A stretch of 64,000 bases of DNA, taken from positions 1,426,001-1,490,000 of the forward strand of contig OZ038378.1 in the NCBI GenBank assembly GCA_964036045.1, in the 5' to 3' direction. This document shows, one piece after another, positions 39,381 to 59,300 of the stretch. Within the stretch, counting starts at the first letter, position 1. The number at the start of each line of letters is the position of its first letter. The position numbers and the translations under genes are program-made. This DNA comes from Eutreptiella sp. 'Long Island Sound 2002'. Taxonomy: Eukaryota; Protista; Euglenida. Under the pieces are notes generated by a model. It made no database searches. It was not told the origin of the DNA and worked only from the letters and a program-made list of their open reading frames with translations.

Positions 39381-39939
39381 AATTTTTCGTTTTTGACCCA
39401 TTTAGCCCCCCGTACCCGGGTACCCCGTTTTGGGGGGGTGGGGGGGGGTGGGGGTGTCGGGGGGGGGGGGGTCAAAACTTCTTTGCGTATTCTGGGTGCT
39501 GTGTGTGGATTTGGACCCAGGTCCCGGGCAACTTTTTTCTTGTACATGGACCCCCTAACCCATGGCGGGGATCCCGGGTCCGAACTCCAGGTACCCCCGG
39601 TCGCCCCCCCCTTATGGGCCCTTGCTAGTGAGGACTTAGCCGTTTTCACGCTGGATAAGGCTGTTTAGTGACACCTGCAAGATTTCCAAAAATTCGACTT
39701 TTTCCAAAACCCTTTTGTTGCCCCTGGGATGGGTTTGGGTGATGATTTAGTGACAATACGGGTACTTGAGCACCCAGGGGGACCCACGTTGTGGCCGCTG
39801 GGCCTATGTAGCCCGTGCCACGGGCCCCCCAAAAGCTTCAAAATTGCTGTTTGTAGGTGGTTCAATGGCATTTGGTGTGAGCACAAACCGCTTACGCAGT
39901 TTTCAACCCTTTACAAGTCAAAAATGGAAAATTTTGCAA

Positions 39940-40780
39940 AGCATTTTTTTGATATTGTGACCACTTACAATGATGAAATATGCTATGTAAAGCATGTTTT
40001 AGCCCCCTTTTATGTCTTTTTCACCCTATTTGGGTGTGGGGGGGGGGGGGGGCTCCCAAGGGGTCTAGGGCGCAACTTGCTTATGCAATTTTCCCGCCTC
40101 AGCAGCTCAAAAATGGAAATTTTCTGAAACTGATTTTTTTTGATACTTTGACCATCCAAAATGATCAAATATCCCATGTGAAGCATGTTTTAGCCCCCTC
40201 TTATGCGTTTTTCACACTATTTGGGTGTTGCGGGTGGGGTGGCTCCCAAGGGGTCCAGGGCACAACTTGCTTATGCAGTTTTCCACCCTCGGCGGCTCAA
40301 AAATGGAAATTTCCGAAGCCGGTTTTTTTGATATTCTGACCATTCACAATGACTAAATATCCTATGTAAAGCATCTTTTAGACCCCACTTATGTGTTTTT
40401 CACCCTATTTGGGCGTTTGGAGGGGGGCAAGGGGGCCGGGGCACAACCTGCTAATGCAGTTTTCCACCCTTGGCGGCTCAAAAATGGAAATTTCCGAAGC
40501 TGTTTTTTTGATGTTTTGACCATTCACAGTGATTCAATATCCTATGTAAAGCATCTTTTAGACCCTCTTTATGTGTTTTTCATCCGCCGTGCACCACAGG
40601 CGGGGGGCAATCAGCCCGGGGGGAAGGCGCAGAACTCTGAGATCGGCCCTTTCCCCCCAGCCCCTCGACCTCTGTACATAGGCTCATGGACAGTAAAAGC
40701 GCAATACCCTCTTTATGTGTTTTTCATCCTATTCGGGTGTTTGGAGGGGCGCAAGGGGCTGGGGAACAGCTTGCTTATGC
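39940..40780. repeat. ~180-190-bp tandem repeat family (4-5 copies), truncated at 40780 by the Helitron; related sequence at 39490-39610 recurs at 56780-56900
   Basis: aagcat(g/c)tttta at ~39990, 40181, 40369, 40548; cttgcttatgca.tttt...gctcaaaaatgg in the intact units. Confidence 0.85.
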
Positions 40781-40799: not shown

Positions 40800-41505
40800 C
40801 GTACATGGGACACGTAGGAATTTGGGAAGCTTAAAACACATTGTTGTTCTAAGTTTCGGAGTGCCAAAAATGTACACGGATACGCGCAATGCAACTCCAT
40901 CATTGTTGACCATTCGTTATTTTTCGACACACACATTATTGGCAACTAGGGACATGTAGGGCAATATAAATGACGTACATGTGGATATGCGCAATGCTAC
41001 CCCATCGTTGTAGACCGTTCGTCTTTTTTCAAGGCACACCTTATTGGCCACTAGGGAGATGTAGGGCAAGTGTTGCGATGCAAGTGCTGGTGACGCGTAG
41101 GAATTTGGGCAACTTAAAACACATTGTTGTTCAAAGTTTCGGAGTGCCAAAAATGTACATGGGGATATGCGCAATGCAACCCTATCATTGTTGACTTTTT
41201 ATCATCCCTCCATGCACACACGCATTGTTGTTCAAAGTTTCGGAGTGCCAAAAATGTACATGGGGATATGCGCAATGCAACCCCATCATTGTTGACTTTG
41301 TATCATCCCTCCATGCACACACGCATTGTTGTTCAAAGTTTCGGAGTGCCAAAAACGTACACGGGGATATGCGCAATGCAACCCCTTTATTAACTTTGTA
41401 TCATCCCTCCATGCACACACGCATTGTTGTTCAAAGTTTCGGAGTGCCAAAAACATACATGGGGATATGCGCAATGCAACCCCACCGTTGTTGAACTTTT
41501 ATCAT
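40800..41505. repeat. Left subterminal array, ~101-bp unit (4 clean plus 2-3 diverged copies)
   Basis: cattgttgttcaaagtttcggagtgccaaaaa...gatatgcgcaatgcaacc; period 101 (41221 to 41322). Confidence 0.9.
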
Positions 41506-42470
41506 CCCTCCATTATTGGCAATTAGAGTCATGTAAGACAAGTGTTTCAAAGCAAGTGTTGCCGTAAGCGTAGGAATTCGGGTAACATCCAACACATTGC
41601 CGTTTAAGGTAACATGCAACACATTGTCCCCCGAAGTTTTGGGGTGTTAAAACTCTTTCATGGGGCCAATTGTGCACATATTGAAGATGTGTTTTGTTGT
41701 GGAGGCGGGCCTCAAGCGGATTAAATCTTTGGCTCATATTATTGAGGGGAGACCACTCAACGCATGTGAACTGCAATAAATGCCCAGCCATGTGAATAAC
41801 ACATAGTCGGGGATTTGTAGCTTTACAAGAACCTGCCAATTGTCGGCACATTAAAGCTTTACGATAACCTGCCAATTGTCGTCACATTGCAGTTGCTATT
41901 TTTCTTGTGTAGGCGCACCTCAAGCAACGATGATGCCGAATGAATTGGACATTGTTATTACCTTTGCAATGTTTTTGAGTTTTTGTGCTCATGCAATGTC
42001 ATAGTCATCACGTTAATTGTGTGTAGCAGCAAATGGGCAAATCTCGTTGAATGCAACTTCGTATTGATGCGTAATGATAGCAATAAGTTACGGTTTCAAA
42101 TTGCATATGCATTCTTTTATAGACAGAAACGTGGAATGCAATCCCAAATGAATCATGAAATGCAACTTGATGTCGTTTTGAGTGTGTGGCATTTTGGTGC
42201 TAAGCAAACAAAGCCGTGCCCACTATCACGTGATGTAGCTACTTTGTGGGCATAGTGGATGCATCATTTTGGAGTCACTATGCAATGGGCAAGGGGCAAA
42301 GGTATGATGTGTTTGGGAAATGCGCAATGCAATTCCACTCACACCCTTCTGATTCCATGTTGATACTTCTTTGCATCACCTGCATAATGTTGCTGCTTGT
42401 ATACACTCTTCGCGCGCTAGGCTCTTCTTTGTTGTCCATCTCTATCAAACCATCCGTCTAAGTTTTCCTG

Positions 42471-45400
42471 ATGAGTGACATGCTGTCAAATCATTTTGGA
42501 ATGCAGTGGAGGTCAAACAGCTGCTTTGCTGCAGCGGTGGTGCAACTATTGGCCGCCGTTCAAGGATTTCAGCAAACCTTTGCTCGTGACTTGGAGGCCA
42601 TGGTTTCGCATGACCTTGAACGGCACGCTTTGGAGGACCTGTTGCTGGCCTTGTCGCAATGCACCACGGATGGTCATCCGGCAGTTCATCGCTACACCTA
42701 TGGCGCGGAAACGGATTGCCATCAACAACTACGCATCTCCGTATCAAAAGTTGCTAACACCTATGCAGCTTTCCACCCCTCCGTTGGACGGCAACAAGAT
42801 GCCCATGAATTATTATCGCTATTGTTCTCATGGATCTTTGCTTTGTTGCACCAACACCCCTCAATCGACAACATCTCGCATGATCAAGCGTCCCATTTGT
42901 TTGGTACACCTTGCATAGAACGGCGCACACGGTTGTCGCAATACTTTCCTCGCCTACCGGATACTTACAGTTTCATTGGGTCATCGATCCTTCAGCGGAC
43001 CACCTGTCGGATCTGCTCATATGAATCAACGCGTCTGATGGTGGAGGGCAGTTGTTGGTGCATTTATGCAACCCACGTTGATGGGCTGTGTGGGGCGATT
43101 CGTGAATTCTTTGCTCCGCATCCGCTTGATGGTGAGTGTCATCAATGCAACCAACAGGGTGCAAGGTTCCAACAACGCATGATATTTCATGTGTCCAAAT
43201 TTGTTTTCTTTCACGTGTCGCTATTCGATTTTTCGCGATAAAAGGGGACGAAAGCTACCCTGCAATTACAATGCTCCACTCCGCCTTACCATTCCGGGTA
43301 CCATAAACGGGAACCACAGCCAGTACTTGCATCTCGTACTGCGAGGATTCTTGTTGCATAGCGGCAACAGCCTCACTAGTGGGCATTACGTGGCAGTAAC
43401 ACAACATAGTGGCATGTGGTACTTGTGCGACGACGACGATGTGCATGTTATTGCCGACCCACACGCGTGGTTGCAGGAAAATCGTGAGTTCACTCCGTAC
43501 ATCTTCTTATTTGAATCCACGCTTAGCGATGCTCCCGAAGAACGTGTGGGTGCTTCTCCTATGTGGGCTATGCGTGAGCAACCAACGCTTGCTAGCTCTT
43601 CCGCAACGTCCCCGGATTCCGCAGCATCGTCGACAAATGGTGACAGTGATTCATCTTCATCATGCTCGGTTGTGTCGTCATCCTCAACCATCACCTCGTC
43701 ATCATGTTGTGGTGAATCGTCAACCGAATCCGCATCATCGCAGACCACAAACGAATCAAATGGCCCCCATGACACTACCATGGGTAATACTGTCCTTGGA
43801 GTGCTTTCGAGTTCATTGTCTCCGGCTCCGTACGCCAAGTTGGAAGAGTTGGTGGAGTTTGTGTCGTGTGCACTTTCCGATGTCCCAACAATTCCATGGG
43901 AGTTCCAATCGCGTCTTGACGAAGTTCGGAAGAGCGCTTGTTCTTTGCCACCTGTACACTGTGCATTCCGCAAGTGTGAATGGAAAGGATCAGACAATGC
44001 ATCGCTCACCACCCATCTACGACTTGCCCATGCTCCCTTTTTTGCTAAGTTGCAAGGGGTCGTGGACATGGGTAATGTCGGACTTCAATTACGGGATGTA
44101 TACGACGAAGCGATTGCATTCAAGGAGCGCCAAAAAATGCCCCTTGTCGGTGCCGGGATTGATCAACGGTGTGCAATGGCTTTTGAGCTGCGCTACAAGG
44201 ATGCCAACATCATGTCTCTGGTGTGTTTCATTTGTGCGCAAATATTTTCCGTGGATTTCGGGTGTTCTGGAAACCCACCCATCAAGTGGCAACATGTCTT
44301 CAATGACGCAGACGGTGGTTCTTTTTGCGGTATGAACCAAGAACAAACGGAACGCCTCCTTGGAATGTCCACTTACTTGGCAACATACGGCACGTCGAAC
44401 CCGGCCATGGAACACCAACTTCAAGCTAGTTGGAAACTCATTGTTCCGTTTTCTTCAACACATGTACATATTATTGGTTGTGGTGAAGATCGACGTTGTT
44501 CTCAATGCCCCAAAGATCCACACGGTGCCGTCTTGTTCATTCATCCTCTTTGTACATCGTGCCAACTACCCGTGTGTGCATCCTGCGAAAAAGCCATCGT
44601 CCGTACACGGCCACGCTTACCAACCTTGGCATTGGCAAATGAGATGTTCGTGGGGTACATGTATGACTACATCTATTTGCAAGGCGTGACTTATGTTGAG
44701 CTATTGTGCAGCAGTGTCATGAACACGGCCATGTTAAGTTTGGTGTTGGAAAAGTTTGGGGAGCGTGTGACAGGTGCCAGTAAAGCACACCAAGCGGGGG
44801 TACGCCTGGGTGCCAAAGGCAATGTCACATGTTTTGCGTTGCCATGGGAGGATGTGTTATCCATCTTCAACACAACCGACGGCAATGTCCCTTTGCCACG
44901 CCTTGGCAGCGATTTGAAAGGTTTGGTGCAAGTTTTGGTGGAAAGTAACAACGGCGCTGATGTCCAAGTGGTTGTCCAACGTGCTAGGGTAAGACGTGCT
45001 GTTGTCGTGCACTTGATTCGCACTATGGTGGAATCACGGCACCCCGCGTATGCTCGTGTTGATTTGGCACATATGGAACAACGTGCCTCGCATCTGCCGG
45101 TGGATGGTATACCCCCGGAAATTGTGGCTATTGTTGACCCCCCACAACACCACAAACAATCTCCTAGGGGGAAGGCAGCTGTTCCCGACGCCCAACCGCT
45201 AGTAGTTGATGGAGACCCATTCCTTGGCCATACTATTGGGGTCCAATTGGACGGCTTTAGCAGTTGCGCCATGGATACCAATGAGCAACGCATCAATGCT
45301 ATTCATAGCGTGGCCGAACAACTTGGTGTTGAAGATCAAGGCAAATGCCAGTTTGCCGATGCTTCCGATGATGACGACGGTGCTACCGCCACCGAAGGTG

Positions 45401-48400
45401 TACCCCGTGTTCACATCAAGACGGGCTCCGCTATGCAAGATCAATTTGACCCAATGTTTGTTGTCTTGGCATTCGCGTTTCTATTCCGCTTTGGGGTTGG
45501 AACACCCGATATTGCACACGGAGCTAGATCGAGAAGAGACGTCGGTGCACCAATTGTCTCATTGTGGGACTATTCGGCCGCGTTGTTGACACGCATTGAG
45601 GGTCAATTTCGTCGAGATTGGGTCTTCATGTTTGCGATGTGGAATTTGCTTTTCCGGACCGTGGTCAATACCAGTAAATACATCTTTCGCAACCAAACAG
45701 CAAAGGCCGGGCCACTTGACACCAACCACATATCGGGGCAGCAATTCTGCGATGCAGCCAAAGCAATCACGCAAGGTCTAGCGGCCAAATACCGTGCGGT
45801 TGATGGCTCTTTCCGAGCAGTGAATGGGGATCTTTCGAAGGTCGCTTACGTAGAAGGTTTGCCTGATCTATCACAAGACATTTTACGGAATGTGCACAAT
45901 GTCACGCGACGCATCGAAGGCACTCACGAGATCCGCCGCCTCATGCGTCATGAAGTTACTGCATATTGCATCTTTCATGGAGCACCCTTGTTGGTTACGT
46001 TCTCCCCAAACGAAAAACACAATGCCGTCATGCTTCGACTCTCTCGAACAGGACGGCATGATCCCATCGCTTTGGCTCAACCGTGGCAAAAACAATGGTG
46101 CGGGCATGATTCTCCCTCACTAGAGATACCCATGGATGATGTGTTGGCCGCCATCCCTACATATGAGCAGCGTGCACTTCTGCTTTCGCAAGATCCACTT
46201 GCTTGTGTGTCCGGGTTTCGTGTACTAGTTCGCTTGCTATTGGCTACCGTATTTGGGGTCCGCACTTGTTTGCATTGTCCGGCTTGTAACTCCCCTTCAG
46301 GCCAAAATCCATGTGCCAACTTCTTTGGCTCAGTGGCTTTGAGCGTTGGTGGTGGGGTTGGTTGTGTTGATGCACACTATGGAGGCGTAGAAAACCAAAA
46401 GTCCAGTGCATTGCACATCCATTGGGTGCTTTTCTTGCAATGCCTTAGCCAGTTCCTGTCTCTCGCAGAAATTGCAGCTCGCATACGTGCACAAGGTAAA
46501 AGTCTTTTGGAACAATACTCCGCTTTTAAATCCCACGTGTCTTGTGAGGAGTACTATGATGTTGCAGCTTTCTCCTTCCGTCGCCAAGGGCTCGAGAATG
46601 CTTGGCCCATGTATGCATCCGATTTGTCGTTCATACGACGGTCACGCTTGTTAGACGTGACAAACCAACTGCGTTCCAATAGCGATATGAAGACTATCCA
46701 GCTGTGGAACAGTCAATACCGAGCCGGCGTGCAATACAACCAGGAGCATTGGCAACATCATGTTCATCCGCTGGTTGATGGCACTGGGGAAAGACGATTG
46801 CTCCCAGGTTGTGTCCGAAAGGGTGAGTCCAACGGCTGCAAGTCACGTTTTCCGAGAACGGCCGAGATACATACCGATGTTGTTGTCCTCTGTTCGGGTT
46901 TGGCTAGCCAGTATGGGTTGCCCACAAGTGGCCAACGTAATGCACTCGGCATGCTCCATGGCCCCCGAAACGAGCCGAATCTTAATGGCACACTCCCCAT
47001 TCTCACGGCATTGTTCAAATGCAATAGTGGCGTACAAGTTGTGTACCGCGTCCCAATTTGTGATATCACCCATTCGCAACATTGCCTGACTCCGGATGAG
47101 TGCAAAGCACATTTTGAAGCAAATAGCAAGGACATTGAGTTGGCTTTACAATGCGCCCAAGATAGTGCAATTGGGTACTTTTGTGACTATGCCACAAAGC
47201 GACAACCCGTTGCAACCAAGGAGATTAAGCGATGGATGACGGGGCATGATCGCCTTGCTGTTGATCTAAAGGCGTCCCGCCGTGGTGAGAGTGTCCAATA
47301 CATAGCGTGTCGCCATACTCAACGCTTCCTTAGTGATTCCCAAGCAAGGGGTACTGCAAGGGGTGGGGTTGAGGTGGTCAATCTCATTTGCAATCGCGCG
47401 GAACACGACGTCACTGCCGCGGAATCTTTCAAATCCGCTATTACCACTAATTTCGCTGGCAAGAATTTTGTAGCCCTTCTTGAAGCTATGTGTCTAAAGC
47501 AACGACCAGCTTCCGCTATTCGTCGAGTTCCACTACGAGTCACCAAGCACGGGAAGTTTGCTACTCTTCAGCCAGTTCCCGACATTGCCACAATCTATGG
47601 ATATCGTGGTACCGATTGCCGTGTTCATTTCTTGGCCGCATATGAATTTGTTTCTTGCTGGACAGTGGCTCCTGTCGCAGTTCCCCTAAATCCCCGCACA
47701 AAGAACGGTGATCCTACTTACCACGTCGATTTAACAGATGAAGGACGGGCGTTCATTTGCCAACAAAAAAGTGCCAAGACCGATTATGTGCTGGAACGTG
47801 GGTGCCATTTCACCATTCAAGAATCTGGGGGAATTGATTGGCTACCATTTCCAGACATTGCTCCGTTATCTGTCATTCGTCACCTTTGGGTCATGGTGCG
47901 CAATCCGCGCCCTGTTGTACCAAAGTTTACGGCCTCTCCCATGGCGGTGAACGCTAATCCAGAGCTATCGGCCAAAGTATACACCGCCTATTTTCGACCT
48001 TGGGTTGCTCACAAAGATCATGCATCCCAACATGTGCCGCATATTTCAGCCCTATGTGATGGTCAACATCGTTTTTTGTCCAAGTGGGGTTCATACTCGG
48101 CTGGAAACATCTTGACGCAGCGACTCAAGCGATTCATACATCAATTTATGTGTGTTTGTAGGATTCGCGACCGTGATGATTTTCAAGATGAGCCCAAGGC
48201 CGATCCCGTCTACTCCTCTTTTCAACTTCCGCGCTCTCACCTCGACGCAGCCCTGAATACGCATGTTAGCCGACCTCCAAAGCGTCCCGACGGTGAACAG
48301 GCCTCGAAGCCCACCAAGGCGCAAAGAAGACATGCCGTGCATGCCCAATCGTCATTGTGTGCCATTGATCTAGCCAAGCGTGCATGGAGTCTACCAACCA

Positions 48401-51400
48401 CGTGCGCAACGCCGTGCAAGGCTGCAACTCCCGCACCAAGTTTTCATAACTTGACTCGATTAATGAAAGCGGCCCGTGGGGACGGTGACCAATCGGCGAT
48501 ACGTGGCGCATCCGGCACCCGGACTCCACACGCTGCCTCCTATCCTCCTTTAACACACGCCAAGATTGATGAAGCTTATGAGGTATGCGCTACGAAGCTC
48601 AATAAAGGGCAACAGACAGTATTGCACGTGGTTGCCGTGCGTGTCAAAGAAGAGCTGGACGACAAGCTCCAAGAGTCCGTCGGCAAAAGCGAGCCTCTCC
48701 GCTGGTTAGTACATGGTGAACCTGGTACTGGTAAGTCGTGGTTGTATCATGTGCTTGCGGAATTCCTCGACATGCTAGGCTTCATCAAAGATGTCCACTA
48801 CGCATTTGCAGCATTCCAAGGAAGAATGGCCCGTTCTATTGGGGGTGGCACGTTGCATCGGCTTGTTGGCCTAGGGTTGCGTAGTTCAAGCACGTCGTCT
48901 GCCACCGAAACCATTCTCTTCGTCCGTCAGTTTACTTTGCGTTGGCTCTTTATTGATGAAATTAGCATGGTGTCCCCGCGATTGCATGCCCCAGTAGAGT
49001 CCCGCTTGCGCACTTACACCCAAGCAGCAGGCACTTACAAGCATGCTCCGAATGGACATATCCGTTCCTTTGGTGGTTTGAACGTCATTGAAAGTGGAGA
49101 CTTTTGGCAACTACCACCACCCGGTGAAGGCCACTCACTTATGACTATACCTCCATGGTTAGATGACGGAAATGAAAAGGTGATTAGTGCCTTAATTCGC
49201 CAAGGGCTAGAATTATTATGGGGTACCGATGCCTTAGGCATAGCGGGCATGACAGAATTGACGGAGAATATGCGCTTCAAGGACGATGCCGAGTTTCAAG
49301 CCGTGCTAAAGCAATGTCGCCACGGTGTCTTGTCAACAACCGGGTTTGACAGCTTAAGAGAGCTCATCCTCACCAATGAACTGGATCCACGCCTAAGAGA
49401 AGAACTTTTTGCAAATGCAGCTGTGATTGTAGCCACCAACGATTTGAAGTACGCCATCAACAAGCAACGTTCGCAGCTATTTGCCGTACAACAAGCAAAG
49501 CGCCTCACTTGGTGCCCCGCCTCGGACAAACCTGCCACGGACAACATTGGTGTTGTTACCTCCAATCAGTATGTGCATTGGCTGCAATATCATGACCGTT
49601 GGACGGCGTCGTTGTATGGCATGCTACCTTTAGTGGAAGGCCTTCCGGTGTTGTTGACCCATCATATTGATCCCTCTACCGAAAAGAATTTGTTGAAGGG
49701 CACAGAGTGCACCCTTCATAGTTGGGTTTGTGATCCTCGCGAACCTGTCGATGATGGAGAAAATGATGCCCGCATTCTTCAATTCCTTCCTTTGGTGGTC
49801 TTTGTAAAGGTGTTGCATGCCACATGGACTGTACCCGGGTTGCAACAACCTGGTCTTTATCCATTACGGCCAATTCCACAAACATGGTACTTGGATCACA
49901 AGAAGGAGCATCCGGTTCTCTCGGTAAATCGCCGCCAATTGCCCATTGCTCCGGCTTTTGGTGTTACGACACACTTCTCACAAGGCGAAACTAGACGCAA
50001 GGCACTCGTGGATTTGACGGGTGATTTCCTACAATGCTACGTGGCAATCAGCCGTGTGCGGTCCGCAAAAGATCTTTTGATTTATCGTCCATTTGATCCA
50101 AAGGTCTTTCAGCAAGGTGATCCCCCCGGACCAAAACGCCTTTTGGAAGTGTTGCGTGAGAAAACACTCACATTTATACAATCCACAAAGCGCAATGACA
50201 TTCACGTGTCCACCCAATGCATCGATTGCGGTTGTTGGGATTATCAGAACATTCACAGTGACCGTTTACCAACACGTGACCCATTTCGTTGTCCTACGTG
50301 TCAAACCGGAAATTGTACATCCAAATGGTGCCGGTCTTGTGGCATTTCTAAGCCCCATGTTGCTTACTCTGGTGCCAACTGGCGTGCTAGTTACGAACTC
50401 CGCCAATGTAAGTTGTGTCGAGCAGGTGCCACCACTAGGATGTGCAAGGAGTGCAACCAGTTGCGCCTTGCAGCCGAGTTTGGAAAGGAAGACACTTGCA
50501 AGCGGTGCACAAAACGCACTTGTACATCGTGCGGGCAATCATGTTTGGCATGCGAATTCGGCAAGGAAGGCAGGTGTGGACGGTGCACAACCCACACGTG
50601 TCCATCGTGCAAGCAGTCACGTTTAGCATCTGAATTCGGCAACAATGGCAAATGTGGACACTGCACAACCCGCGTGTGTCCATCCTGCAACAAGTCCCGT
50701 CTAGCATGCGCATTCAGCAAGGATGGAAAGTGCGGCCAATGCACAACCCGCGTGTGTCCATCCTGCAACAAGTGCCGCATGGCATGCGAATTCAGCAAGG
50801 ATGGAAAGTGCAGCCAATGCACAACCCGCGTGTGTCCATCCTGCAACAAGTGCCGCATGGCATGCGAATTTAGCAAGGACGGAATGTGCGGCCAATGCAC
50901 AACCCGCGTGTGTCCATCCTGCAAAAAGTCCCGTGTGGCATGTGAATTCGACAAGGACGGAAAATGTCGGCAATGCACAACCCGTGTGTGTCCGTCCTGC
51001 AACAAGTCCCGTTTGGCATGCGAATTCAGCAAGGACGGAAAGTGCGGCCAATGCACGACCCGCACATGTCCATCCTGCAACAAGTCCCGCATGGCATGCG
51101 AATTCAGCAAGGACGGAAAGTGCAACCAATGCACAACCCGCGTGTGTCCATCCTGCAAAAAGTCCCGTGTGGCATGTGAATTCGACAAGGACGGAAAATG
51201 TCGGCAATGCACGACCCGCACATGTCCATCCTGCAACATGTCCCGTTTGGCATGCGAAATCAACAAGCAGGGGATGTGCAAGAGTTGCAAAGCTACGAAG
51301 AGTCCTTCTTTGTTTCGTTGCGCTCAATGTGATGCACAATTCCCTAAGACACAATTCAGTGCAACTGAATTCCGGAATGGGTTGCAACGGCGTTGTAAGA

Positions 51401-51777
51401 AGTGCATGGTTGGTCATCATCCAAAAAGCCCACAACACCTAGCTTTGAACTGTTCATCATGCGATATCGTGAGGCCACGTGACTGGTTTTCAAAGAAGCA
51501 GTGGGACAAGGGAAGATCGAAGCGTTGCAAGCTTTGCGTGACACCATCAAAGGCTTCAGCACAAGGTTCACCTTCTTGCATCACACCAACCTCTGCAACT
51601 CCTCCAAGTTCGCCGACCATACTTTCTACCATAGCAACCCCCTTGGATGGGCAAAGTGCTCCCTCTACCCACAAGCAGAGTGGAGCAAAAAGGTCCCTCG
51701 ACGACGTGCTCCAACATGGCAACCACGGCGACAGACCGTCCAAAGATCCTCCCTCAAAAAGGCAACGCAAATCGTAG
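42471..51777 (+). CDS. USP(C19)-C2H2/Cys fingers-DUF6570-like-HUH Rep-PIF1 helicase-Stc1-like zinc-finger repeats polyprotein (~3100 aa; +1 slip at T5 43229-43233)
   Basis: USP: GMQWRSNSCFAAAVVQLL (Cys 42522), QQDAHELL, HSGNSLTSGHYVA (His 43384), WYLCDD (Asp 43429). Rep: APLLVTFSP, VENQKSSALHIHW (46387-46425), YFCDYATK (47176-47199). Helicase: HGEPGTGKS (48712-48738), FIDEISMV, GDFWQLPP, LTENMR, TTHFSQGET, YVAISRV. No AP-endonuclease domain seen. Confidence 0.92.
50440..51290 (+). repeat. In-frame 78-bp (26-aa) Cys-rich repeat, 11 copies
   Basis: TTRVCPSCNKSRLACEFSKDGKCGQC units; period 78 (50662 to 50740). Flanked by longer CxxC..FS..Q/W..RCxxC fingers. Confidence 0.95.
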
Positions 51778-52029
51778 ACAGCAATCTCCATCAACCACAC
51801 CGTGTTCAACTTCCGGAGAATATTCTTCAGCAAATTAGCCGCCGGGCATTTGTAGCTTTGGAAACGTCAAATGTGTTTCACCTGAGATGACTGGACTCAA
51901 GTAAAAGCATTGGCTTGAGCTTCGCAGCTGGTGGCGCCAGTAGCAATATAGTCTTTTGCGGTCGCTTGCCAAAGGCCGAAGGGTGAGTCGCATTTTGTGG
52001 TGAAAACGGTTCGGCTGCCTCTGGGAACT

Positions 52030-55000
52030 GTTTTGACATGCAAGGGGCAAATGCGCAATGCAAGCCCATTCTATGACCCATCATACCGGCACCAATCCCA
52101 TCCTCCTCTCAAATGCCCATACTTTGACCAAGCTAACGGTAAACGCGCAATGCAACCCGTTACTTGAATGCGAATTTCCGTTGCCAGCTACATCAATGAC
52201 ATGCAAGGGGCAAATGCGCAATGCAAGCCATTCTTTGACACATCATACCGGCACCGTGCACCGTTCCATGCACCGTGTCCAATTGCCCAATGTAAGCCCT
52301 TTTCCAAATCATCCCAATACTTCTCTTGCACACCAACGGTGAATGCGCAATGCAAGCCGTCCCGTGCACCGTGTCCAATTGAGCAATGCAAGCCCCTCTT
52401 GCACACCAACCGTGAATGCACAATGCAAGCCGTTCTGCGCACCGTGTCCAATTGCGCCATGCAAGCCCATCTCCAACCCATCTCATTACTTCTCTTGCAC
52501 ACCAACGGTGAATGCGCATTGCAAGCCGTTCCGTGCACCGTGTCCAATTGAGCAATGCAAGCCCATCTCCAACCCATCTCAATACTTCTCTTCCACACCA
52601 ACGGTGAATGCGCCACGCAAGCCGTTCCGTGCACCGTGTCCAATTGCCCAATGTAAGCCCTTTTCCAAACCATCTTCTTACTACTCTTGCACACCAACGG
52701 TGAATGCGCAAAGCAAGCCGTTCCGTACACCGTGTCCAATTGCCCAATGTAAGCCCTTTTCCAAATCATCTCATTACTTCTCTTGCACACCAACGGTGAA
52801 TGCGCAATGCAAGCCGTTCCATGCACCGTGTCCAATTGCCCAATGTAAGCCCTTTTCCGAATCATCTTCTTACTTCTCTTGCGAATCATCTTCTTACTTC
52901 TCTTGCACACCAACGGTGAATGCGCAAAGCAAGCCGTTCCGTACACCGTGTCCAATTGCCCAATGTAAGCCCTTTTCCAAATCGTCTCATTACTTCTCTT
53001 GCACACCAACGGTGAATGCGCATTGCAAGCCGTTCCGTGCACCGTGTCCAATTGCCTAATGTAAGCCCTTTTCCAATCATCTTCTTACTTATCTTGCACA
53101 CCAACGGTGAATGCGCAATGCAAGCCGTTCCGTGCACCGTGTCCAATTGAGCAATGCAAGCCCCTCTTGCACACCAACGGTGAATGCACAATGCAAGCCG
53201 TTCCGTGCACCGTGTCCAATTGAGCAATGCAAGCCCATCTCCAACCCATCTCATTACTTCTCTTGCACACCAACGGTGAATGCGCAATGCAAGCCGTTCC
53301 GTGCACCGTGTCCAATTGCCCAATGTAAGCCCTTTTCCAAATCATCTCATTACTTCTCTTGCACATCAACGGTGAATGTGCAATGCAAGCCGTTCCGTGC
53401 ACCGTGTCCAATTGCCCAATGTAAGCCCTTTTCCAAATCATCTCATTACTTCTCTTGCACACCAACGGTGAATGCGCAATGCAAGCCGTTCCGTGCACCG
53501 TGTCCAATTGCCCAATGTAAGCCCTTTTCCAAATCATCTTCTTACTACTCTTGCACACCAACGGTGAATGCGCAATGCAAGCCGTTCCGTGCACCGTGTC
53601 CAATTGCCCAATGTAAGCCCTTTTCCAAGTCATCTCATTACTTCTCTTGCACACCAACGGTGAATGCGCAATGCAAGCCGTTCCGTGCACCGTGTCCAAT
53701 TGCCCAATGTAAGCCCTTTTCCAAATCATCTCATTACTTTTCTTGCACACCAACGGTGAATGCGCAATGCAAGCCGTCCCGTGCACCGTGTCCAATTGCC
53801 CAATGTAAGCCCTTTTCCAATCATCTTCTTACTTATCTTGCACACCAACGGTGAATGCGCAATGCAAGCCGCTCTGTGCACCGTGTCCAGTTGAGCAATG
53901 CAAGCCCCTCTTGCACACCAACGGTGAATGCACAATGCAAGCCGTTCCGTGCACCGTGTCCAATTGAGCAATGCAAGCCCATCTCCAACCCATCTCATTA
54001 CTTCTCTTGCACACCAACGGTGAATGCGCAATGCAAGCCGTTCCGTGCACCGTGTCCAATTAGTCAATGTAAGCCCTTTTCCAAATCATCTCATTACTTC
54101 TCTTGCACACCAACGGTGAATGCGCAATGCAAGCCGTTCCGTGCACCGTGTCCAATTGCCCAATGTAAGCCCTTTTCCAAACCATCTTCTTGCTTCTCTT
54201 GCACACCAACGGTGAATGCGCAATGCAAGCCGCTCTGTGCACCGTGTCCAGTTGAGCAATGCAAGCCCCTCTTGCACACCAACGGTGAATGCACAATGCA
54301 AGCCGTTCCGTGCACCGTGTCCAATTGAGCAATGCAAGCCCATCTCCAACCCATCTCATTACTTCTCTTGCACACCAACGGTGAATGCGCAATGCAAGCC
54401 GTTCCGTGCACCGTGTCCAATTAGTCAATGTAAGCCCTTTTCCAAATCATCTCATTACTTCTCTTGCACACCAACGGTGAATGCGCAATGCAAGCCGTTC
54501 CGTGCACCGTGTCCAATTGCCCAATGTAAGCCCTTTTCCAAACCATCTTCTTGCTTCTCTTGCACACCAACGGTGAATGCGCAATGCAAGCCGTTCTGCG
54601 CACCCTGTCCAATTGCCCAATGCAAGCCCATCTCCAACCCATCTCAATACTTCTCTTCCACACCAACGGTGAATGCGCAATACAAGCCGTTCCATGCACC
54701 GTGTCCAATTGCCCAATGCAAGCCCATCTCCAACCCATCTCATTACTTCTCTTGCACACCAACGGTGAATGCGCAATGCAAGCCGTTCCGTGCACCGTGT
54801 CCAATTGCCCAATGTAAGCCCTTTTCCAAATCATCTCATTACTTCTCTTGCACATCAACGGTGAATGTGCAATGCAAGCCGTTCCGTGCACCGTGTCCAA
54901 TTGCCCAATGTAAGCCCTTTTCCAAATCATCTCATTACTTCTCTTGCACACCAACGGTGAATGCGCAATGCAAGCCGTTCCGTGCACCGTGTCCAATTGC

Positions 55001-56310
55001 CCAATGTAAGCCCTTTTCCAAATCATCTTCTTACTACTCTTGCACACCAACGGTGAATGCGCAATGCAAGCCGTTCCGTGCACCGTGTCCAATTGCCCAA
55101 TGTAAGCCCTTTTCCAAGTCATCTCATTACTTCTCTTGCACACCAACGGTGAATGTGCAATGCAAGCCGTTCCGTGCACCGTGTCCAATTGCCCAATGTA
55201 AGCCCTTTTCCAAATCATCTCATTACTTCTCTTGCACACCAACGGTGAATGCGCAATGCAAGCCGTTCCGTGCACCGTGTCCAATTGCCCAATGTAAGCC
55301 CTTTTCCAAATCATCTTCTTACTACTCTTGCACACCAACGGTGAATGCGCAATGCAAGCCGTTCCGTGCACCGTGTCCAATTGCCCAATGTAAGCCCTTT
55401 TCCAAGTCATCTCATTACTTCTCTTGCACACCAACGGTGAATGCGCAATGCAAGCCGTTCCGTGCACCGTGTCCAATTGCCCAATGTAAGCCCTTTTCCA
55501 AATCATCTCATTACTTTTCTTGCACACCAACGGTGAATGCGCAATGCAAGCCGTCCCGTGCACCGTGTCCAATTGCCCAATGTAAGCCCCTTTCCAACCC
55601 ATCTCATTGCTTCTTTTGCACACCAACGGTGAATGCGCAATGCAAGCCGCTCTGTGCACCGTGTCCAGTTGAGCAATGCAAGCCCCTCTTGCACACCAAC
55701 GGTGAATGCACAATGCAAGCCGTTCCGTGCACCGTGTCCAATTGAGCAATGCAAGCCCATCTCCAACCCATCTCATTACTTCTCTTGCACACCAACGGTG
55801 AATGCGCAATGCAAGCCGTTCCGTGCACCGTGTCCAATTAGTCAATGTAAGCCCTTTTCCAAATCATCTCATTACTTCTCTTGCACACCAACGGTGAATG
55901 CGCAATGCAAGCCGTTCCGTGCACCGTGTCCAATTGCCCAATGTAAGCCCTTTTCCAAACCATCTTCTTGCTTCTCTTGCACACCAACGGTGAATGCGCA
56001 ATGCAAGCCGTTCTGCGCACCCTGTCCAATTGCCCAATGCAAGCCCATCTCCAACCCATCTCAATACTTCTCTTCCACACCAACGGTGAATGCGCAATAC
56101 AAGCCGTTCCATGCACCGTGTCCAATTGCCCAATGCAAGCCCATCTCCAACCCATCTCATTACTTCTCGTGCACACCAACGGTGAATGCGCAATGCAAGC
56201 CGTTCTGCGCACCGTGTCAAATTGCCCTATCCAAGCCCTTCTCCTAGCCATCTCATTACTTCTCTTGCACAACAACGGTCAATGCGCAATGCAAGCCGTT
56301 CTGTGTCCCG
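52030..56310. repeat. Right subterminal array: 96-bp unit with 73-bp variants (~45 units) and higher-order blocks
   Basis: gcacaccaacggtgaatgcgcaatgcaagccgttccgtgcaccgtgtccaattgcccaatgtaagccc...; 361-bp (73+3x96) block repeat from 53855 to 54216. Confidence 0.97.
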
Positions 56311-59300
56311 TGTCCACCAGCACTCTGATTCACTTCCACTTTCCCCTTGATACATTTCTCACCCCATGGTGTATCTCTAACCCCATGACCGCCTCAGACA
56401 CCCGTAGTCTTGAGGTTTTCGGTACCCATTGCCGGAAATACCCAAGCCGATGCAACCCTACCGTACACGCAAGTAGGGGCGGTGCGAATAGTCGGATCAC
56501 ACCTGGGCCGCATACCCAACAGTTCGGAGGTGCCCGACACTATGTGACAGCCAAAAAGGTTTTCATTTGGTGACCATGCATGCCAACCCCTCATGCCATG
56601 GCGTCCCTGCCCTAGCATGCATCTCCTCACTGCTTAAACTGCCCTCTCGCACCTCTCCCCTCTTGGTCTTATGCAGTTTTCCCGCCTCAGCAGCTCAAGA
56701 ATGGTTGTCCCTCTCCCCTCTTCGAGGTGCCCTGCCGAAGGCAATAGAATTTTTGTTTGTGTATTGCGGCCGTATTGTGGCCGCTGTGTGTTGATTCAGA
56801 CCCAGGTCCTCAACAACTTTTTTCTTGTACATGGACCCCCGAACCCGTGGCTGGGGTTCCGGGTCCAAACTCCAGTTACCCCCGGTCGCCCCCCCCATAT
56901 GGGCACTTGCCAGTGAGCACAACTGTTTTCAGGCCCGTTTCAGGTTGTGAGACCAAAGCCAGGAGGAAAGGGCTTGCTGAACAGTGATCCGAAAGGGCGG
57001 TACCGCCAAGGCCCTTGCATGGTCAAAGGGGGGCACGTAAGGGGTCCCGGATGCACCGCCTCCACACCCATGTGAGGGACAGCCCTGGTGCCCATGGGGT
57101 CACAACGAGGTGCTACCACTGCGCGTGTGGGGCCACGGTTGGAGGTAGTCGCACGGCCCGTGGCGCGCTGAGGAGCTATTCGACCTGAACCATTCCAGTG
57201 GGGAGGGATATGTCCTCCTCCCCAGGGTGCCACCGTCGCCCCAGGGGGTTACGACCTTCGCAACAATACTGTCAGAGTGCAGTACCATGTCGTCCCCTCC
57301 GGTGTCGAAGGGGGGCACCACTTGGGCCTCTGCGGTGTCACCGGGGGTGGCCTTTGGTTTCCATGGTGTCAACAGGATACTGCTTTGACACGTACTGGCA
57401 CCTACGGGGTATGCTGTCACACCCTTTAGCATCAAAGCAGGTAACAGGTCCATGAGGGAAAAATTCTGTTGTGAACAAGTTGTGTCGGAAGTTGTGTAGA
57501 TGCTGTGTTTAGGGGTGTCCAGGATTGGTGCTGCATATCCTCTCTCTCTCTTTCTCTCTCTCAACATCTCTGGCTCACCTCCAAGGGCCAACGAACAATG
57601 CAATGTCACATGTGTAACGGAATTCACTCACACGTTTCCTCACAACAGTGTGGCAACAGTGGGGCCCGGCAAGCATTGAAGCAGTGCAGCGTTTGTCTAC
57701 TGTACAGAAGAAGCTGCTGCAGAAATGCCCCTGTGCAGTTTGTCCCATCCCCACGACCAATTTGGCACCTACAATGTCATTGGGGAGGGGGGGGGGTTGC
57801 TCGCCTGGTCCGTTGGGTATGGCAAGGGGGTTTCTCTTGACCGCTATGCTATCGAAAGGGGTTAACCACTCTGGCATCCATGGGTGATACGGGCGGGTTA
57901 CAACATAGGCAGCCCTGTTGTCACATGGGGGTGCCACCGGGTGACCAGGCCTGTTGTGGGCTCACAAAACAAGGGCGGCAAGAGGCGTGCCCCGAACACA
58001 AATCCGTTTGGTCCATGGCTGCTTGTGATGGGGTTTTGGTCACTGATCAATTGAGCTTTTTAGAGCTCCCTGCATTGGAGGACAGGAGGACAATGGTTGC
58101 AAAGTGGGTCACCATCTTAGCATCTCTACTCCCTTGCTTGGCTAGTTTCATAGGAGGGTAACAGCTCGACCCCTATGGTGTTCCAATCCGGGCATCTTGG
58201 CACCGTAGAGATTGTGCTTAAGGGGTTTCATGGTTTGTCCACAGTGTTGTGAACATTGTCCACAAGGTTGTCAGTGCAGGGCACGTCGTCGGGATCCATG
58301 AGAGAACCGGGGAGTATGCTTAGCACCCATCAAATAAAGTGCCGCATTGGCACCACAAGTGTCAAAAGGCAGTGTCAATGTGGCATCTATGGCATCACTA
58401 TCAAGTGCCACCGGCACCAATGCAACCCAGGGTGCCAAATTGGCAGTTGTGATCAATTGGGGTAACACCTGCGGGATTACCATCTCGGCACCAGTGGTGT
58501 CAAAAAAGGCTATGATATTGGCATTTGGTGTCATAATGGGGTGGCTCCTTGCCACCTGCTATAGGGGGCTGTGCCTGCTATCGTGTTATTTGGCATCAAA
58601 CACAGGTGCCATTTTAGCACCTGTGGCGTCAAGCAGGGGTGCCATTTTGGCCCAGATCATGTCACAGTGTGATACCATCTTGGCACTATGCTTGGCACCT
58701 ATGAATGTGGTGTTGCCGGGGGATTGCTGACTTCACACTGACAGCACCAAAGCAACCATGTTGGCACCTATTGCTTCATCGGGGAATATCATCCAAGGAA
58801 GCACTGTATGTACATTGTATGGCACGGTAGCACCATGGGACATGCCAAAAAGAAGTGGTGGGTATCACTGTAGTGTCATCGGGGGGTACCATTTTGGCAT
58901 GCACGGTGTCATAAGCTGGGTATCATCTTCACACCTGTGATGGAAAGGTGTGGTACCTCGTTTATACCTGTTGCGTTACATGGGTGGTATCCCCTTGCCG
59001 TAGTGTTGTCAATGCGGAACACAGTGCGGGCACTCCTGGTGTTAAAGGGGAGTACCGGCTTGGCATCTATACTATCAAGCATAGTAAACCCCTGTCACTG
59101 ATGAATTCAAACTGAACTACCACGCGAGCACTACTAGTTTGAGAGGGCACCTGTAGGAGGCTACCTTGCCAAACCTGCCACGAAAGGAAGTTTGGGGCCA
59201 ATTTCTTGGTAAACCTGCCCAAATTCGCACCAAAAACCCTCCCCATTCAAAAGTTCCGCGAATGCCTGTTCACAAAGGGTGCAAGTGTTCTCAATTCATT

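Follow-up and report, generated by a model that had tools for sequence, protein, structure and literature searches.

A USP-type deubiquitinase domain at the N-terminus of a Helitron2-type transposase gene in Eutreptiella, split by one extra T

The window analyzed here is a stretch of 64,000 nucleotides from the euglenid Eutreptiella sp. 'Long Island Sound 2002' (GenBank assembly GCA_964036045.1, contig OZ038378.1, positions 1,426,001 to 1,490,000 of the forward strand), and all window positions below are counted from its first letter. It very probably holds a ~16-kb transposon, a Helitron-like element of the Helitron2 type (HLE2), with one giant gene whose product starts with a USP deubiquitinase domain and which is split in this copy by a run of five T (T5). 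The two open reading frames (ORFs) that make up the gene, ORF A and ORF B, meet at this run (Table 1). The stop codon of ORF A is three codons past the T5 run, the frame of ORF B is reached by dropping one base, and no other frame break is present across the ~9.3-kb coding region, which is preceded by an in-frame stop four codons 5' of the ORF A ATG. As read from the sequence, the ancestral product is a protein of about 3100 amino acids in which the USP domain comes first and is followed, in frame, by a Ser-rich linker, DUF6570, the HUH nuclease Rep, a PIF1 helicase and a zinc-finger array. This is also the domain order of ORF B, from the C-terminal half of the USP to the Cys-rich repeat array. 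For genome annotation, this means that a single broken transposon gene, and not a host deubiquitinase beside a helicase, accounts for ORF A and ORF B.

Profile searches agree with the first-pass annotation of this DNA, which had expected UCH, Helitron_like_N and PIF1 in the joined protein. The Pfam UCH profile (PF00443, curated cut-off 23.9 bits) is matched above its cut-off by each half of the domain, with residues 10-141 of ORF A covering profile positions 2-109 (E 4e-7, 30.3 bits) and the N-terminal 110 residues of ORF B (window 43225-43560) covering positions 166-253 (E 9e-9, 35.7 bits). The matches of ORF B to DUF6570, Helitron_like_N and PIF1 all exceed the curated cut-offs as well. The triad is formed by Cys18, the His within SGHY and, 16 residues beyond this His, the second Asp in the DDDD run; these positions align with those of USP46 and USP12. 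A profile built from the family matches the solved structures of USP46, USP12, USP2 and USP1 at E values of 1e-19 to 1e-17. The Rep with its HUH and two-Tyr motifs, the PIF1 helicase with Walker A and B motifs and the DUF6570 upstream of Rep place the element in HLE2. No Pfam match to an AP endonuclease (Exo_endo_phos) was found in ORF B at E <= 0.1, and the C-terminus is occupied by the zinc-finger array; the element is therefore not a Helentron in the strict sense.

Two further copies of the same Helitron family, here called siblings, are present in the assembly of the same genome (ENA ERZ25074135), and they resolve the relationship of the two frames. The first sibling (L003/L004) is 95% identical to the window, and over 2.8 kb spanning the USP the single gap between them is the extra T at 43229. 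Its ORF P0013, which has 889 amino acids and contains both UCH and DUF6570, crosses the junction without a change of frame and so bears out the earlier proposal that the two frames join when one T is removed. The second sibling (L005) is 5'-truncated and 97% identical, with four T (T4) at the junction as in L003. Homopolymer runs are classic error sites and no frame break other than T5 occurs over 9.3 kb, which would favor an assembly or read error in a copy that is in fact intact and encodes the full fusion protein. That explanation, which the first-pass annotation had left standing, is nevertheless quite unlikely, as contigs derived from the reads of three runs of the same organism include one piece that equals the window exactly, with T5 and zero differences over 245 bases, and a second piece with T4 and 17 other differences, which is the sibling. 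Since the same runs call T4 where the surrounding sequence is identical, a systematic error in reading homopolymers is unlikely. T4 is the ancestral state, T5 appears to be a private one-base insertion, and the window copy seems truly frameshifted. The gene in the window would have been disabled very recently and be intact apart from this base, with normal translation predicted to end after 256 residues.

Two other ways to account for the split were ruled out. An intron is contradicted by the alignment with in-frame relatives, where the residues flanking the T run are direct neighbors, and by the siblings, in which exactly one T is missing; a programmed +1 frameshift is contradicted by the siblings and the other families, which are plainly in frame. 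The RNA runs among those listed contained none of the sampled words of the region. The siblings show some further differences from the window. At L005:9770-9800, the 3' end of the element (..GGCAATAGAATTTT) directly abuts a point within the USP region, corresponding to window ~43207, a junction of the head-to-tail or 5'-truncated type made by rolling-circle elements. A segment of 126 bp upstream of the ATG (42214-42340) is missing from the sibling and from some of the read-derived contigs, and a 6.8-kb insertion (L003:12646-19444) lies in the sibling at the point matching window ~45110.

The combination of USP and Rep-helicase (RepHel) is repeated at other loci with different flanks. In the same genome, P0006 (locus L002, USP ~47% identical to that of the window) and P0007 (locus L001, ~35% identical) both lead from the USP over a linker to RepHel's conserved N-region, and the in-frame P0007 matches positions 7-253 of the UCH profile at E 1e-19. 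In L001 the USP is followed by DUF6570, Rep/PIF1 and then a DnaJ ORF (L001:10001-20321), and its RepHel is 53% identical to that of the window. Environmental or metagenomic sequences supply more distant relatives: P0002, a single uninterrupted ORF of 3811 amino acids with full UCH (E 5e-32), DUF6570, Rep and PIF1; P0030, 4504 amino acids, with UCH, Rep and PIF1; and P0031, 3879 amino acids, with UCH by Pfam and a RepHel-like part by BLASTP. Together with the two T4 siblings, P0006, P0007 and the single-ORF P0002 and P0030 uphold the earlier assignment of the USP to the Helitron transposase gene, and the sibling copies and other taxa with the same fusion that it had called for were thus found. 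The locus L001 belongs to a family whose 90% cluster has 84 members, far commoner than the family of the window, of which three copies were seen.

Helitrons are known to capture fragments of host genes (PMC11417382), and the USP piece could in principle be a host gene or fragment that merely adjoins the element or was recently captured by it. The first-pass annotation had named an unlinked host gene in other copies as an outcome that would overturn its reading, but the same arrangement recurs with different flanks, in other families and in metagenomic relatives. An exhaustive single-sequence phmmer search of ORF A against 1.84 billion representatives returned five matches at E <= 1e-3, four of which were the query and Helitron copies from this genome's assembly, while the fifth, P0008 (E 1e-8), was an unrelated immunoglobulin-repeat protein. 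No cellular or host USP was found at this threshold, and the absence of a close host USP argues against a recent capture. Furthermore, in two families the ORF begins a short way upstream of the Cys box, implying that the USP is the true N-terminus of the protein. A host origin of this kind is thus barely credible. The USP identity across families declines in the same order as the RepHel identity, but faster, a ranking consistent with one old acquisition. The USP looks like an old, selected part of the HLE2 transposase, not a chance neighbor. When residues 1-335 of P0007 were compared by protein-language-model features, the nearest Atlas clusters were compact USP proteins of giant viruses (Nucleocytoviricota) with a score of 0.96, which serves only as a pointer to a possible origin.

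Every relative, down to ~24% identity, retains the Cys, the QQD.HE block and the His, as well as the Asp that follows the His by 16 residues. A comparison of the window with L003 gives ratios of non-synonymous to synonymous substitution rates (dN/dS) of 0.41 for the USP, from 32.5 non-synonymous and 21.5 synonymous changes, and of 0.33 for the remainder; a chi-square calculated by hand on the USP substitution counts gave p ~0.002. The value of 0.41 indicates that part of the divergence arose under selection and that the USP is no less constrained than the transposase. Some points weigh against the reading of a freshly broken gene that starts with an active USP. Only one pair, with 54 substitutions, underlies the dN/dS. 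The runs that contain T5 may be the assembly's own data, and T5 lacks independent replication in another individual. All three copies seen of the window's family are damaged, with no fully intact one among them. The AlphaFold model of the USP is too poor to show the active-site geometry, with a predicted local distance difference test score (pLDDT) of 54 and a predicted template-modeling score (pTM) of 0.63. This model was built on residues 1-350 of the in-frame sibling P0013, and its poor quality results from a shallow alignment, as the word-indexed protein searches gave three relatives each. When the same model was used for a Foldseek search, the top 50 PDB matches were nonetheless all USPs, with TM scores of ~0.5. 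Lastly, the canonical oxyanion Asn of USP/C19 enzymes is absent from the window USP. The place, five residues before Cys18, is taken by Trp13 (42507-42509). The earlier statement that all USP motifs are intact therefore holds for the Cys box, QQDAHE, the His box and the Asp, which were all located, but not for the oxyanion residue.

The Trp is found at the oxyanion position in all three USP-Helitron families of the genome (window, P0005 and L001; for example L001:10007-10009), whereas the distant Helitron USPs P0002, P0030 and P0031 retain the Asn. In PLpro, the papain-like protease of SARS-CoV-2, Trp106 serves as the oxyanion residue and Cys111 follows five residues later (PMC11266423). As Trp works in PLpro, a Trp at this position is compatible with catalysis, and by this analogy the oxyanion Trp seems to be a variant and no proof of inactivity. 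The loss of Asn in all three families, the high divergence of the domain from ordinary USPs and the missing zinc-ribbon Cys in one sibling would all suit an inactive pseudo-enzyme that serves as a ubiquitin-binding module, for example one that targets the transposase to ubiquitinated chromatin or PCNA. Such a role is unlikely, however, because Cys, His and Asp are kept across families at 24-47% identity, which is unexpected for a pure binding module, because the same Trp is functional in PLpro and because the more distant Helitron USPs keep the Asn.

The likeness to PLpro also raises the question of self-processing, since a USP fold with a PLpro-like Trp opens a multi-domain protein of ~3100 amino acids and could cut this giant polyprotein. 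In P0006, LGG directly precedes a conserved SSSLSP block. The Gly-Gly is not conserved, though, with LGV at the same place in the window and LAT in P0007, and no further LxGG-type site was seen in the linker, so that a self-processing protease is highly improbable. Instead, the conserved Cys-His-Asp triad, together with a Trp as in PLpro, suggests that the USP domain is an active deubiquitinase. It would act in cis or nearby. One option is that it strips ubiquitin off the transposase itself and thereby spares the transposase from the proteasome. In the other, the domain would remove ubiquitin from replication or chromatin proteins of the host where rolling-circle transposition takes place, which would alter replication and repair signaling or spare these host proteins from degradation. 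By analogy, the job would equal the one already suggested for other Helitrons with a VTD or OTU deubiquitinase, which the function put forward in the first-pass annotation, protection of the transposase or removal of ubiquitin marks, matches as well.

The features of the element are listed in Table 1. Its bounds are approximate and come from the loss of homology with the siblings, the left one (~40812) being the start of L003 homology and the right one (~56755, at ..AATAGAATTTTT) the end of L004 homology; the 3' end of the element runs into a T tract, and its sequence is the one found at the internal junction of L005. Within the 64 kb of the window there is no second copy of the element.

Table 1. 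Positions of the ORFs, the USP and RepHel motifs and the repeats of the element in the window.
Feature	Position	Strand	Description
HLE2 element, approximate extent	40812-56755	+	~16 kb; bounds from end of sibling homology
5' subterminal tandem repeats	40878-41513	+	101-105 bp, with GCGCAATGCAAC; common to L003
ORF A	42471-43241	+	256 amino acids; N-terminal half of USP/C19 domain
USP Cys box	42507-42527	+	catalytic Cys18 at 42522-42524
QQDAHE motif	42792-42809	+	in ORF A
Two CxxC pairs	43005-43016, 43137-43148	+	in ORF A
ORF B	43189-51777	+	2862 amino acids, uninterrupted
T5 run	43229-43233	+	junction of ORF A and ORF B frames
USP C-terminal half	43234-43515	+	ORF B frame; Pfam UCH; alignment to USP46/USP12 and relatives
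His box SGHYVAV	43378-43398	+	ORF B frame
Asp run with catalytic Asp	43417-43440	+	ORF B frame
DUF6570	44608-45069	+	ORF B residues 474-627; profile 1-128; Pfam E 3e-8
Rep (HUH) nuclease	45577-47199	+	Helitron_like_N plus motifs
Helitron_like_N	45577-46431	+	ORF B residues 797-1081; profile 3-191; Pfam E 4e-9
Rep HIH motif	46414-46428	+	
Rep two-Tyr motif	47173-47199	+	
PIF1-type helicase core	48661-49119	+	ORF B residues 1825-1977; profile 11-154; Pfam E 6e-9
Walker A	48715-48738	+	GxGKS; helicase C-terminal to Rep, same protein
Walker B	48949-48966	+	DE; helicase C-terminal to Rep, same protein
C-terminal Cys-rich (zinc-finger-like) array	50543-51267	+	26-residue repeats; period 78 bp; 9.3 copies by Tandem Repeats Finder (TRF)
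3' subterminal tandem array	52323-56316	+	96-bp unit, ~4 kb, with GCGCAATGCAAGCC; common to L004

The Cys-rich array gives a weak Pfam match to Stc1 (E 8e-5). In the window it exceeds its counterpart at L004:13613-14208 by three units (234 bp), and the number of zinc fingers thus differs between copies. The 96-bp array and the 101-105-bp repeats at the two ends of the element have a GCGCAATGCAA core in common, in the same orientation, and at P0005 a truncated USP ORF leads straight into an array of the 96-bp type. A different tandem repeat with a 188-bp unit is present to the left of the element (39890-40610). A piece resembling this unit is found at 56669-56705 near the 3' end, within 58 bp (56651-56708) that are missing from the sibling.

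The association of UCH with HLE2 is already published. In the HELIANO survey of Li et al. (NAR 2024, PMC11417382), UCH is one of 20 additional domains that form stable components of Helitron-like elements, and it occurs almost exclusively in HLE2, of which DUF6570 is a marker, with enrichment in two subgroups and mostly in subgroups dominated by lungfish and axolotl. The claim of the first-pass annotation that USP/C19 is not standard Helitron cargo is thus superseded, and its case for novelty falls on the very ground it had named. The UCH-bearing HLE2 of that survey have the same RepHel, DUF6570 and Pfam UCH as the element described here. However, four domains were considered likely to lie in the ORF of RepHel and UCH is not among the four, the other 17 being in different ORFs (PMC11417382). 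While HELIANO gives a domain tally only, the USP here is the in-frame N-terminus of RepHel in a protist and in environmental contigs, and this in-frame fusion, these hosts and the Trp variant are what is added to the published association. No paper was found that describes the in-frame N-terminal position of a USP or an oxyanion Trp in Helitrons.

Coronavirus PLpro and cellular USPs are the nearest known systems outside transposons. PLpro is alike as a USP-fold cysteine protease and deubiquitinase within a giant replication polyprotein, with its Trp five residues before the Cys (PMC11266423). It has no detectable sequence kinship with the Helitron USP beyond the fold class, and the Helitron has no conserved LxGG site, so that this is a resemblance and not membership. 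The catalytic domains of USP12, USP46, USP1 and USP2, which are the best matches among solved structures, share the compact core with zinc-ribbon 'fingers', but they are only ~15-17% identical and have an Asn where the Helitron USP has its Trp. The locus and its in-frame siblings provide concrete sequences for testing the USP type and a natural Trp-for-Asn variant that parallels the viral PLpro.

Among transposons, a further parallel is provided by the Helentrons, whose VTD domains cleave ubiquitin and K48, K63 and K11 chains (Erven et al., Nat Commun 2022, PMC9741609). The role proposed for the Helitron VTD and OTU domains is to protect proteins needed for transposition (PMC9741609). The VTD (herpes-tegument-like) and OTU systems resemble the element described here in that a cysteine deubiquitinase forms part of the reading frame of RepHel. 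They differ in that their deubiquitinases are of another class than the USP/C19 type, which is known here from sequence, and in the AP endonuclease, which was not found here. It is possible, although held tentatively, that in algae and other protists one clade of Helitron2-type transposons carries an old, selected N-terminal USP, with a PLpro-like Trp in one sub-clade, and that, if the domain is active and needed, it represents a third class of deubiquitinase recruited independently. With OTU, the herpes-tegument-like VTD and USP, three unrelated classes of deubiquitinase occur on Helitrons, and this convergence suggests that ubiquitin removal is of importance to rolling-circle transposition or helps a very large transposase to survive. 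If the USP is indeed active and needed for transposition, deubiquitination would be a general requirement of eukaryotic rolling-circle transposition.

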